64,000 nt of DNA from Paraspadella gotoi (Eukaryota; Animalia; Chaetognatha), in contig CM119266.1 in assembly GCA_051294375.1 (NCBI GenBank), forward strand, positions 5,379,210 through 5,443,209. Reading direction: 5' to 3'. The notes below the pieces were generated by a model. The model saw only the letters and a program-made list of their open reading frames with translations, did not search any database and was not told where the DNA came from. Below are positions 47,762 through 51,545 of this stretch, piece after piece. Position numbers and translations under genes: made by a program. Every line of letters starts with the position of its first letter. Position 1 is the first letter of the stretch.

Positions 47762-49177
47762 AACTTTGGGCGAGTCAAATGAAAAATTACAAACACGACA
47801 TTGTATTTTTGTTGGACGGAAGCAACAGCACCGGTTTGACCAGCTTCAAAAAAGGGCTCGCAGTCATCGGGAATTTCACAAAACAATTGGAATTCGGAAT
47901 AGATAAATCCAGGTGAAAAACAAAAGCCAGAAATTAAATTTAAAGATAGAAAGAGAGAAAAAGAAAGAAAGAGAGAGAGAAAGAAAGAAAGAGGTCCATT
48001 CAAGACCCACCATGAGGTTTATCTTGTAAAAGGAATAGCCCGCCATAGCCTGTCCAAAGTCAAGAGCAAAATAGCTTAATTATCTAATGAATGAATCTGT
48101 ACATTGTTTGTAACAATCTCGTACTATAATTGTGCCAAAATTCCCTTTTTTTAGAATTTCCGTGATTCAATATTCGTCAGTGGGAATCTTCACCGAGTTG
48201 AGTTTCGGTGATTCCGTCTCACAAAATCTAGTTTGGATTCAAGACAAGATCGCGAGCATTCCCTTCAGGGGTGGAGCCAAGAACACATCCGGGTAAGCGG
48301 GAATCAATGAGATTTTACGAAAATTATAATATATCCGGGTTCAAGTGGGTCACAATGATAATTTACGAAAATGATTTTGAATGGAACGGGCATAAAGAGT
48401 TCTATTCAGAGGTGGTCAAAATTGCTTAGATGTTGATGGTCATGTGGTCATGTGGGCAGAACCAACCGTACTTCCCGTGCCCCTTCGGCAGCAATGGCAG
48501 GATACTTTAGGGAACGAACCGGGTAACTCATGGTCATGAGCAAATAGCTTTACTCAATTGGACACTTGGTTTAGAGGCGGGATTAAATTATCACAATGCC
48601 CGACTTAAAGCAGAAACTTAGACTAATATTTCGAGTTGAAGGTCTATTCTATTGGCGACTTCAAGAGATTAAAGTCGAGAGTGCGGATTTTATTTGGGAT
48701 GGCGAGGTCGTTGGTGGCTTTGGCTTCTCGGACGAGTGGTGGGTCTTTCCCAGAAGTCCTGTCACCACATTTAAGGAAAAACTCTTGGATTTCTAAGACG
48801 AAATCAAAATTAAATTTGATTTTGAGAAGGATTGAGTCCTGATCAATGATACTGAAACTATAACAGGCTAAGTCTATTTATAGCTGAAAAGAGGATCGGA
48901 GGCAAGAGTGATTATGGCAGTTCCATCGATCTTGCACGCTGATTGGTCGAATCCGGTTCTATCTCGATCAATAAGGATCCGGCGATTCCATTCCGACGGA
49001 GATCCCCCCCCCCTTCGCTAACCCCGTTTTACCCTCTTTCTCAACAGAGGTCTGATGGAGATGAAGCGTCATTTCCAATGGAACGTTCGACCGATGGGAC
49101 ACAACGAAAATGTCGTCAGGACAGGAATCGTCTTAACTGACGGAAAGGAAGAGGAGGTTCCGCCGCAACTCGCCCAG
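47762..49177 (+). CDS. VWA-B N-terminal two-thirds: exons 47762-47912, 48155-48292, 49048-49177
   Basis: HDIVFLLDGSNS..KSRISVIQYSS..IPFRGGAKNTSGGL..TGIVLTDGKEEEVPPQLAQ; intact MIDAS (DxSxS, T, D); splice phases 2,2,0 consistent. Confidence 0.9.
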
Positions 49178-49621
49178 GTTAAGAGTTGAGAGATTAAGAG
49201 ATTCTGCACGTACATGAGCAATTGAGTATCAAACAAAGTTAAAGACTAAAGACTGCAAGGTTCAAGTTATTGAGAACAATATTTCAATCATTAAAAAATG
49301 CTACTATTCTTTTGAAAACAAAATTCTTCGAACGGTAGATCTTAGAAATAAAATTTAAAAATAAAATCCCTCCCTTTCTCTCTCTCTCTCTCTCTCTCTC
49401 TCTCTCCTCTTCTGTCTCTCTCTCTCCTCTCATCTCTCTCTCTCTCTCTCTCGTCTCCTCTCCCTCCCTCTCTCCCTTCATCTCTCTCTCTACCTCCCTC
49501 CCTCTTTCTCTTTCTCCCTCCCTCTCCTCTCACCCTACTCTATCTCTCTCTCTCTCTATACCCTCTCTCTCTTACTCTAATCACTCTCCTTCTCTCTCTC
49601 TCTCTCTCTCTCCTTCTCCAG

Positions 49622-51087
49622 GACGTGGACATAGCCTTCCTCTTCGACGTGACCGGCAGCATGGGCGGTCAAATCGAGAGCGTCAAACGCGACGCCATTC
49701 GGATGGTGACCGACATCAAGCGCACCTACGCCGATTCGCTCGTCCGAGTGGGTTTCGTCGGCTACCGAGATTTCGGCGACGTCCCTCAGTTTGTGACATT
49801 TGACTTTAGCCGAGATTTTGCGAAATTCAAATCATGGCTGGGAAGCGTCGGAGCTGCCGGTTTGTATTTATTTAATTTTTTATTTTTTTAATTATTTATT
49901 TATTTATTTATTTATTTTTTATTTTTTATTTTTTATTTTTTTAAATTTTTTAATTTTTAAATTTTTTAATTTTTTTAATTTTTTAATTTTTTATTTTTTT
50001 AATTTTTTAATTTTTTAATTTTTTAATTTTTTAATTTTTTAATTTGATTTTTTAATTTTTTTTAATTTATTTATTTATTTATTTATTTATTTATNNNNNN
50101 NNNNNNNNNNNNNNNNNNNNNNNNNNNNNNNNNNNNNNNNNNNNNNNNNNNNNNNNNNNNNNNNNNNNNNNNNNNNNNNNNNNNNNNNNNNNNNNNNNNN
50201 NNNNNNNNNNNNNNNNNNNNNNNNNNNNNNNNNNNNNNNNNNNNNNNNNNNNNNNNNNNNNNNNNNNNNNNNNNNNNNNNNNNNNNNNNNNNNNNNTTTT
50301 TAATTTTTTAATTTTTTAATTTTTTAATTTTTTTATGATTTCAATTTTTTTTCATAAAATCAAGCAAATCAATGAAATTATCAATTAATTGTACTCAATC
50401 AAAATGAAAAATAGTTGTCAAGTCAACTTTCCTATCAATCAATCAACCAATCAACCATCGAATCAATAGAAAAGAAAAAAGATCAATCGAACAATCATTA
50501 AATCCGATCGAACTAACGTATCAATCAACGATCTAATCAATCAATCAATCAAACAGGCGGCGGCGACACTCCGGAAAACGTCCGCGGAGGAATCGACAAA
50601 ATCTTCCCCCTGAATTGGCGAGCGAATCTGACTCGCGTTTTGGTCGGGATCGCCGACGCCGAAGGTCACGGTGACTGGGACTCGAGAGAGTCGACGGCGA
50701 GAATCATCGCCAGGAGTCAACTCACTCGACTTAAGTGCGAAACTAGAATAGTCAAGTTTCTCTTCCTCTCGACTCCTTATCCGTCGACCAGTTTGAAGTC
50801 GATGCTGAGAGCTTTCGAGGTGAGAGAGAGAGAGAGAGAGAGAGAGAGAGAGAGAGAGAGAGAGAGAGAGAGAGAGAGAGAGAGAGAGAGAGAGAGAGAG
50901 AGAGAGAGAGAGAGAGAGAGAGAGAATTGAGGCATTGTCCCTAATTATAGGAGGAGTCGAGATACGATTGTCAGGGTTCTCTCGCAACGAACTCGAGATG
51001 GTTCAAGAAATCCTCTGTCAACTCGGCCAACATTGTGAACGAGATTGTGAACTTCACCAAAATCGCCATCAAGACTGCTTCGTTTCG
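49622..51087 (+). CDS. VWA-C, a complete inserted VWA domain: exons 49622-49859, 50557-50819, 50975(or 50951)-51087
   Basis: [81 protein letters not shown]; phases 0-1-0-2 consistent. Confidence 0.9.
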
Positions 51088-51351
51088 GTGAAGAAATTAA
51101 AAGATTTAAAAGAAAAATTAAAAGATTTAAAAAAAATAAAGAAAGAAAAGAAAAAAAAATTTATAAGGAAAATTAAAAGATTAAAAAAATTAAATTAAAA
51201 ATAAAGAAAGAAAATAAAAGAAGTAAAAGGAAGAGAAACGAAAAGAAAAGAAAAGAAAAGAAAAGAAAAGAAAAGAAAAGAAAAGAAAAGAAAAGAAAAG
51301 AAAAGAAAAGAAAAGAAAAGAAAAGAAAAGAACATCCTTCTTTTTCCTCAG

Positions 51352-51545
51352 CAACATCTCCCTCCAACTCCGAGAGACCGGCGTCGATGTGGTGGGCGTG
51401 GGTCTGAGTCCCGACGCCGACGACGATAAACTCCGGGACATTGTGGGCGAAGGGGTCGTGGGCAAAGGAGACAAGGTCATCGTTGTGGGGAAGGACGACG
51501 ACTTGGATGACGTGGTCAAGGTCGTGGAGGAGGCCATTGTGGATG
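51352..51545 (+). CDS. VWA-B C-terminal third
   Basis: RNISLQLRETGVDVVGVGLSPDADDDKLRDIVGE..VIVVGKDDDLDDVVKVVEEAIVD fits the VWA helix5-strandE-helix6-strandF-helix7 pattern. Confidence 0.85.

Follow-up and report, generated by a model that had tools for sequence, protein, structure and literature searches.

The window analysed here, a stretch of 64,000 nucleotides of the chaetognath Paraspadella gotoi (contig CM119266.1, positions 5,379,210 to 5,443,209 of the forward strand), contains between positions 47762 and 51545 animal-type genomic DNA with short GC-richer exons amid AT-rich, microsatellite-rich introns. At this locus we identified seven exons on the plus strand that encode a module of 416 residues, in which one VWA domain very probably resides within another VWA domain. 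Once joined, the exons comprise 1251 nt and are translated without any stop codon, one upstream base being carried in. All introns between them are of the GT...AG type and the junction phases are 2,2,0,1,0,2. These exon boundaries, phases and in-frame joins had been put forward in the original prediction, which was made from the sequence without database searches. They were reproduced throughout, and the peptides quoted there, including NISLQLRETGVDVVGVGL, were all found in the spliced translation. In the following, the domain encoded by exons 1 to 3 together with exon 7 is termed the host, and the domain encoded by exons 4 to 6 the insert (Table 1).

The three exons of the insert amount to 638 nt. 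When exon 3 is joined straight to exon 7, the frame is shifted and a stop codon is encountered after 25 codons, as expected from the earlier claim that skipping of the insert is not frame-neutral. Accordingly, the reading frame depends on the insert being retained. Exon 6 is matched in tblastn by the homologous protein P0001 described below (E = 6e-4). Both junctions between host and insert, 49177/49622 and 51087/51352, are located within gap-free sequence.

The host harbors a complete metal ion-dependent adhesion site (MIDAS) in the window, composed of D18-G-S20-N-S22, T94 and D127, the latter as part of a TDG motif. Pfam VWA (PF00092) covers profile positions 1-117 with exons 1-3 of the spliced protein, with a score of 85.4 bits versus a cut-off of 23.8. 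Moreover, a search of PDB sequences with the family profile yielded matches on the N-terminal part of the host only, the best of which were collagen VI alpha3/alpha1/alpha2, mussel PTMP1, MIC2 and the I domains of integrin alpha1/alphaL/alphaM. These similarities assign the host to the VWA domains of the collagen VI / vWF-A / integrin-I type. Integrin_beta (PF00362) reached 13.1-15.4 bits on the module, which is below its cut-off of 24.8.

The insert was recognized by VWA_4 (PF25106) with 38.6 bits versus a cut-off of 27 (E = 1e-9). This Pfam alignment comprises only positions 2-86 of the 169 profile positions; the C-terminal half is divergent, and AlphaFold2 predicts betaE', alpha5', betaF' and a terminal helix in this part. 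Many database matches of the insert are bacterial. The best and longest alignments were obtained with eukaryotic proteins that pair VWA_4 with Alpha_kinase, HSP70-like or protein-kinase (Pkinase) domains. Horizontal transfer of the insert from bacteria was considered and rejected, because the VWA_4 domains found beside alpha-kinase or HSP70 in eukaryotes show the better similarity and can be aligned further, the segment ...YYF.KIN..TDKM... included. As the insert belongs to a subfamily different from that of the host, the nesting reflects the capture of a foreign VWA type and no stray tandem duplication. In addition, two cysteines of the insert, C279 and C313, are invariant in the seven-sequence family alignment, and Cys is present at either column in none of the 101 VWA_4-type reference rows. 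This pair probably forms a disulfide, which would adapt an otherwise cytoplasmic-type VWA_4 domain to the extracellular milieu.

The assignment of exon 7 is decisive for the architecture of the module. After excision of the insert and fusion of exon 7 to exon 3, the Pfam VWA match became contiguous over profile positions 1-155 (79.1 bits, E = 6e-22). Using hhalign, the joined N- and C-terminal parts of the host were aligned to a profile of 60 classical VWA domains over 176 contiguous columns (template 10-186) with a probability of 99.9 and E = 1e-32. Employed separately, the N-terminal part ended at template column 134, and exon 7 was placed on columns 134-185 (probability 92.6). With a VWA_4-type profile, the insert gave a probability of 100 (E = 6e-47, 141 columns), and the alignment was not extended into exon 7 when the latter was added; exon 7 itself gave a probability of 1.8. 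Hence, exon 7 fills exactly the VWA columns that are missing from the N-terminal part and thereby completes the host domain.

The structure of the 416-residue module was predicted with AlphaFold2 using a 47-row alignment of 10 nested sequences and 37 insert-type domains, all verified to align on the insert. Classical VWA rows were kept out of this alignment, as MAFFT placed whole host-type domains, and even split N- and C-terminal pieces, on the insert. The resulting model has a mean predicted local distance difference test score (pLDDT) of 91.5 and a predicted template modelling score (pTM) of 0.88; a run with a two-sequence alignment gave a pLDDT of 42 and was discarded. The N-terminal part of the host is predicted to form betaA (10-18), alpha1, betaB (49-56), betaC (61-65), alpha2, alpha3 and betaD (118-126). 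It is followed by the elements of the insert, namely betaA' (141-148), alpha1', betaB' (180-187), betaC' (196-202), alpha2', alpha3', betaD' (244-251), alpha4' (264-281), betaE' (285-290), alpha5' (296-308) and betaF' (324-328). A single uninterrupted helix of ~30 residues (331-360), comprising the last helix of the insert and alpha4 of the host, then crosses the second junction, and the host resumes with betaE (363-369), alpha5, betaF (394-396) and alpha6 (403-415). According to this model, the module consists of two full six-stranded sets of VWA elements, one of which is discontinuous.

Taken together, exons 4-6 very probably encode a complete VWA_4-type domain (residues 140-351) located inside the loop between betaD and alpha4 of a classical VWA domain, to which exons 1-3 and exon 7 contribute. 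The host is split by these 212 residues at a point ~12 residues past its MIDAS Asp (TDG). A complete second VWA in the loop behind the TDG motif of a first one, with the host resuming at exon 7, was the central proposal of the original prediction. It is upheld by Pfam, hhalign and AlphaFold2 as well as by the read-through homologues and conserved introns described below. The structural model contains two VWA element sets with one of them split, exactly as foreseen, and by hhalign, Pfam and the order of AlphaFold2 elements exon 7 belongs neither to the insert nor to an independent domain. The proposal has to be refined in that the insert is a member of the VWA_4 subfamily, of the alpha-kinase-associated type, and no duplicate of the host.

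We searched 1.84 billion representatives with a HMMER profile built from the spliced protein and P0001, and the best 150 representatives were listed. P0001 is a protein of 709 residues with 39% identity over 98% of the query. It is encoded by an uninterrupted open reading frame (ORF) on the 2453-nt contig L001, starts with a signal peptide and is continuous across both junctions, with GIILTDGKEEEAPVDTALEVDLMFMIDITGSM at the one and VAIKGVSFVDISEKLKNEAGVDIIGIGI at the other. The sequence 'acatgggg' at the 5'-end of L001 presumably represents a remnant of a SMART cDNA oligo, which it resembles. Full-length HMMER matches in a single stretch were obtained for P0106 (E = 1e-131), P0108 (3e-108), P0113 (5e-99) and P0139 (7e-51), all far beyond chance, and P0141, which shares a 90% cluster with P0260, was matched in two stretches. 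All these sequences (P0001, P0106, P0108, P0113, P0139 and P0141/P0260) are colinear with the module through both junctions and represent uninterrupted ORFs on contigs of 1.8-5 kb. The nested architecture, for which the original prediction had named no second example, is therefore found in at least five divergent protein clusters with 30-46% identity, which cross both junctions on marine eukaryotic transcript contigs. The family matches originate from JGI/IMG contigs or from the MERC catalogue (run ERR1712121), which we take to be eukaryotic metatranscriptomes of Tara Oceans; a functional name is given for none of the matches. When the family alignment was used as query, P0141 was recovered together with three VWA_4 proteins and nothing else; an alpha-kinase domain is present in two of the latter.

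All proteins of the family start with a signal peptide, followed by the nested VWA and EGF repeats. Behind the EGF repeats they continue with SRCR, with cEGF and the chitin-binding domain CBM_14, or with thyroglobulin-1 and CBM_14. Just past the stop codon of P0001, at positions 2247-2330 of L001, a by-eye translation (VRLINKKGIINCSFGRLEVYHKP) resembles the start of another SRCR repeat, which may mean an alternative isoform or a recent truncation. As a further observation on the family, ~30 residues from the betaE'-alpha5' region of the insert are missing in P0141 but present in its cluster-mate P0260, which may reflect an isoform or an assembly difference.

With the family-specific C-terminal part as query, only P0266 and P0267 were found, two short ORFs that represent genomic exons on contigs L002-L014 (genomic DNA) of Tara Oceans metagenomes. 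Over the equivalent of exon 7, contig L002 and the P0113 cDNA show 100% identity; the contig then enters an 81-nt GT-AG intron. As this intron is absent from the cDNA, P0113 derives from spliced RNA. In L002 and L010 the acceptor (...ttacag/T AAC ATT TCG) is in phase 2, one residue ahead of NIS, and corresponds to window position 51352; the donor (...AAAAG/gt) is in phase 1 ahead of an EGF exon and corresponds to 51545. Intron conservation was thus seen at the insert-to-host junction, the first junction having been examined in the window only, and searches for related loci on metagenome contigs revealed nothing further. The read-through homologues and the shared introns indicate that the nested architecture is expressed and conserved (30-46% identity), with the intron kept at the insert-to-host junction. 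It is common to a small family of expressed genes, presumably of marine planktonic animals.

Three other explanations for the module have to be considered. A truncated first VWA directly ahead of a second VWA is known from database proteins such as P0219, and Foldseek, which aligns sequentially, ranks the two-VWA tandem proteins PTMP1 and collagen VI best. Accordingly, the two domains could be arranged in tandem, with a truncated first VWA and with exon 7 as the C-terminus of the second VWA or as a small independent domain. However, hhalign puts exon 7 on the classical columns 134-185 with a VWA_4 probability of only 1.8, the insert already possesses its own betaE', betaF' and terminal helix, and the Pfam VWA match is contiguous over 1-155 once the insert is excised; we consider a tandem arrangement to be practically negligible. 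A slightly larger, still very small probability is given to an artefact of the gene model or the assembly, with exons 4-6 representing a separate gene within an intron or having been misplaced by a scaffold join at the N gap. The 202-N gap lies inside the insert region, the window gene is modelled from genomic sequence and homologues, and the splice sites had been picked so as to keep the frame. Yet both critical junctions are in ungapped sequence, and six divergent cDNA-type homologues cross both junctions and the position of the gap with no residues missing; from this colinearity we conclude that no coding sequence is missing at the gap. Likewise, an artefact does not agree with the host frame being broken without the insert. 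The insert could also be an alternative cassette, exon 3 being joined to a cryptic acceptor in exon 7 after the AG at 51375-51376 (...PPQLAQ/TGVDVVGV...). This AG is preceded by a pyrimidine-rich stretch and restores phase 0, and the ~30-residue difference between P0141 and P0260 inside the insert suggests that some splicing variation may exist in the family. Nevertheless, its use would remove most of the conserved helix alpha4 (RNISLQLRE), the acceptor at 51352 is found at the same position and in the same phase in two other genomes, and among the matches listed there is no homologue without the insert. Skipping by this route therefore appears improbable.

Several points weigh against the interpretation as a nested domain. 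The gene model is built from genomic sequence and homologues, and the 202-N gap parts exons 1-4 from exons 5-7. In the AlphaFold2 alignment the host part is covered by 10 rows only, and the packing of betaE and betaF beside betaD of the host, the spacing of the metal sites and the Cys-Cys distance were deduced from the order of elements and from confidence. In addition, the exons at 46519-46659 and 53123-53940 allow more than one structure of the complete mRNA, and the degenerate host MIDAS sequences in P0139 and P0141 argue against a coupling to the host site as the conserved function.

Table 1. Exons of the nested VWA module and further features of the locus in the 64,000-nt window
Feature	Position	Strand	Description
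Host VWA exon 1	47762..47912	+	betaA with MIDAS DGSNS, alpha1
Host VWA exon 2	48155..48292	+	betaB, betaC, alpha2, MIDAS Thr (GGAKNTSG)
Host VWA exon 3	49048..49177	+	alpha3, betaD with MIDAS Asp (LTDG), acidic linker KEEEVPPQLAQ; donor phase 0
Insert exon 4	49622..49859	+	betaA' (DVTGSM), alpha1', betaB', betaC', alpha2'
Assembly gap, 202 N	50095..50296		within the intron separating insert exons 4 and 5
Insert exon 5	50557..50819	+	GGGDTPE, alpha3', betaD' (IADAEGHG), alpha4' up to invariant Cys279, betaE', alpha5'
Insert exon 6	50951..51087	+	invariant Cys313, betaF', final insert helix (to ...KTASF); donor phase 2
Host VWA exon 7	51352..51545	+	alpha4 (runs on from the last helix of the insert), betaE, alpha5, betaF, alpha6; donor phase 1
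Putative first exon	45915..45975	+	ATG and signal peptide MTAVIFESIVTLISFLCVSQ; donor phase 1; in frame with exon 47762 or exon 46519
Phase 1-1 exon, may be optional	46519..46659	+	only betaA-alpha1 of a further VWA, VKVVFAFDGSMKETS
Candidate phase 1-1 exon, uncertain	47260..47373	+	Ser/Gly-rich linker; GC-rich island, AG/GT borders, open in three frames
EGF exon, phase 1-1	52738..52848	+	Pfam EGF E = 2e-9; in frame with exon 7, as in homologous cDNAs
Divergent-VWA exon	53123..53295	+	betaB-alpha3; without its own betaA
Divergent-VWA exon	53683..53940	+	betaD-betaF of the same divergent VWA

The order of signal peptide, nested VWA and EGF in the window is the same as in the homologues. The module forms the N-terminus of a secreted mosaic protein composed of signal peptide, nested VWA, EGF and further extracellular domains, and exons for ZP-C, Sushi, EGF_CA and SEA are located farther downstream on the same strand. 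The host had formerly been labelled VWA-B, which implied an upstream VWA-A. The host VWA itself stands, whereas upstream of it only a one-exon betaA-alpha1 fragment is present (46519-46659). Concerning this exon, its use as a mutually exclusive alternative to 47762-47912 was rejected, since the phases are 1-1 versus 1-2 and stop codons arise on joining to exon 48155. The fragment and the divergent-VWA exons (53123-53940) reach Pfam VWA only when concatenated (30.1 bits versus 23.8, profile 2-139), and with hhalign the concatenated pieces gave 76%, compared with 4.6% for 46519-46659 alone and 41% for 53123-53940 alone. Furthermore, the nested unit of 1251 nt is entered and left in phase 1, and all four possible exon chains are open. 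These data would be compatible with the nested unit and the EGF exon (47762-52848) being an optional cassette or being placed inside an outer VWA (46519-46659 plus 53123-53940), an arrangement that would add to the nesting described above. We regard this as possible, yet on balance unlikely, because the Pfam match is weak, a PDB search with the concatenated pieces found no match, no outer VWA was found in any homologous cDNA, and for the exon at 47260-47373 homology support was not found. If true, a third VWA around the nested unit would result in a three-level 'Russian doll' of one fold.

With regard to function, the mean pairwise identity within the family is 38% for the N-terminal part of the host, 34% for the insert and 29% for the C-terminal part of the host. 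No member of the family deviates at the metal-site residues D148, T150, S152, E225 and D252 of the insert, which also occur in 98-101 of the 101 reference rows; D222 is found in nine of the ten family rows and in 100 of the 101 reference rows. The DxSxS motif of the host is intact in the window and in four homologues. In P0139 it reads DIKED, and in P0141 the TDG motif is changed to THG. The insert thus probably provides the main binding site, its metal site being invariant and that of the host degenerate in two lineages. The module would serve, in the extracellular matrix or at the cell surface, as a secreted unit for ligand binding or adhesion that depends on divalent cations; the metal site of the insert would be its primary, indispensable binding site and the host VWA mainly its pedestal.

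The last helix of the insert and alpha4 of the host, which are modelled as one helix, would hold the insert rigidly on the MIDAS-bearing face of the host. Where the host MIDAS is intact, as in the window gene, it may represent a second metal site that is mechanically coupled via the shared helix. The short acidic N-terminal link (TDGKEEE...) together with helix 331-360, which begins where alpha7 of an I domain would end, renders such a mechanical coupling plausible in these cases. Such a coupling between the two metal sites is suggested by analogy with integrin alphaI/betaI (PMC12422189). Gating or allosteric coupling of the host metal site by the insert had been put forward with reservation in the original prediction; the continuous helix modelled across the second junction fits this idea, but the decay of the host MIDAS in two lineages argues against coupling to the host site as the conserved function. 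It is doubtful whether the resemblance goes so far that the module corresponds, on a single chain, to the alphaI/betaI relay of integrins, perhaps itself located inside a third VWA (46519-46659 plus 53123-53940). In such a relay, a ligand bound at the insert MIDAS would shift the C-terminal helix of the insert, which is continuous with host alpha4 just past the host MIDAS loop, and this shift would switch the metal site of the host, or the reverse.

Some further features of the window are worth recording. At 2868-6528 and 18096-21695, imperfect trinucleotide repeats, (GAC)n in one case and the complementary (TCG)n in the other, extend over ~3.6 kb each; they are inverted relative to each other, lie ~11.5 kb apart and account for the GC-rich, strongly AT-skewed blocks of the composition profile. 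A GC-rich element, probably an interspersed repeat, recurs at ~37576-37803, 42521-42782, 45110-45285 and 46873-47040, its copies having similar open frames (...VTPPVTGAVTL...); one of them lies in the intron upstream of the nested VWA. Fragments of RhoGAP-like exons (MTAENLGTVFGPTLMRCPD; EGIYRISGF) are present at 37844-38137 (+), 42804-42941 (+) and ~32830-32900 (-), of which the copy at 42804 looks degenerate. Finally, the SEA exon block at 57458-57919 (+) (Pfam SEA, E = 2e-4) is duplicated ~3.6 kb downstream at ~61086-61700 (+), and the duplication takes in the neighbouring EGF-like exon as well as flanking repeats.

VWA domains are the textbook example of metal-dependent adhesion modules. 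Their conformational switching has been described best for the integrins, where it requires two chains and a beta-propeller host. VWA folds are also known as inserts in the beta-propeller of integrin alpha and in the hybrid domain of integrin beta. A single chain with one VWA rigidly anchored in the metal-site face of a second would represent a compact natural system for studying how two MIDAS sites can be coupled. The family described here defines a previously unannotated group of expressed proteins of marine zooplankton and bears on the question of how a cytoplasmic-type VWA_4 domain entered the extracellular space. At the same time, it provides a clean case of a domain inserted into another one of the same fold, with an intron that is conserved where the insert passes into the host. 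For annotation it has to be kept in mind that domain callers working sequentially will list such a protein as 'truncated VWA + VWA_4' and overlook the discontinuous domain.

A close parallel in arrangement is the integrin alpha I domain, which, like the insert, is a VWA introduced via adjacent N- and C-termini into a loop of its host; both systems comprise two metal-site domains. In integrins, the C-terminal helix of the inserted domain is the mechanical link to a second MIDAS-type site, with the alpha7 helix and the internal-ligand Glu of alpha I binding the MIDAS of the beta subunit (PMC12422189). In the module, the last helix of the insert runs directly into the host. The corresponding I/LEGT internal-ligand motif (PMC12422189) is absent at the junction ...AIKTASF/RNISLQL, and no conserved Glu motif is present there in the family alignment; integrin alpha or FG-GAP domains were found neither in the window gene segments nor in the family cDNAs. 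Moreover, the host in integrins is formed by a beta-propeller, and another polypeptide contributes the second VWA-like domain, whereas here the host is a VWA on the same chain, and the alpha I insert is of the collagen type in contrast to the VWA_4 type found here. The I-like domain of integrin beta, situated in the hybrid domain, and the VWA nested in dCache_1 of the calcium-channel protein alpha2delta and of CACHD1 (PMC8915833) are further cases of a VWA within another domain, but unlike here their hosts are not VWA domains.

Collagen VI, the matrilins, VWA2/AMACO and PTMP1 share the sequence type of the host as well as secretion and the order of VWA followed by EGF. In these proteins, however, the VWA domains are contiguous and in tandem, whereas here the second domain is located inside the first. 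PTMP1 and collagen VI were also the top Foldseek matches, with a best query-normalised TM-score of 0.39, and Foldseek found no PDB chain with a nested VWA-in-VWA arrangement. The closest relatives of the insert are the VWA_4 domains of alpha-kinase (vwkA-type), HSP70-like, kinase and bacterial proteins, with 35-47% identity over ~120-165 residues, which share with it DxTGSM, GYRD, GGGDxPE, DAPxHG and the ...TDKM... helix. These domains are free-standing, mostly cytoplasmic and devoid of the Cys pair, whereas the insert is embedded and contains it. Alpha_kinase (PF02816) is present in the insert relatives P0217, P0209, P0235 and P0234, and it is absent from all six proteins of the nested family that were scanned.

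Full-text literature searches retrieved no report of a VWA within a VWA, and no named database protein is among the family matches listed. According to a 2026 survey (PMC13114784), insertions of domains are frequent, and the largest share of them is contributed by Rossmann-like alpha/beta sandwiches; its text and the supplements examined do not mention vWA. While the fold and domain insertion as such are known, the nesting of one fold within itself at the MIDAS face, in a family that is conserved and expressed, appears to be new.

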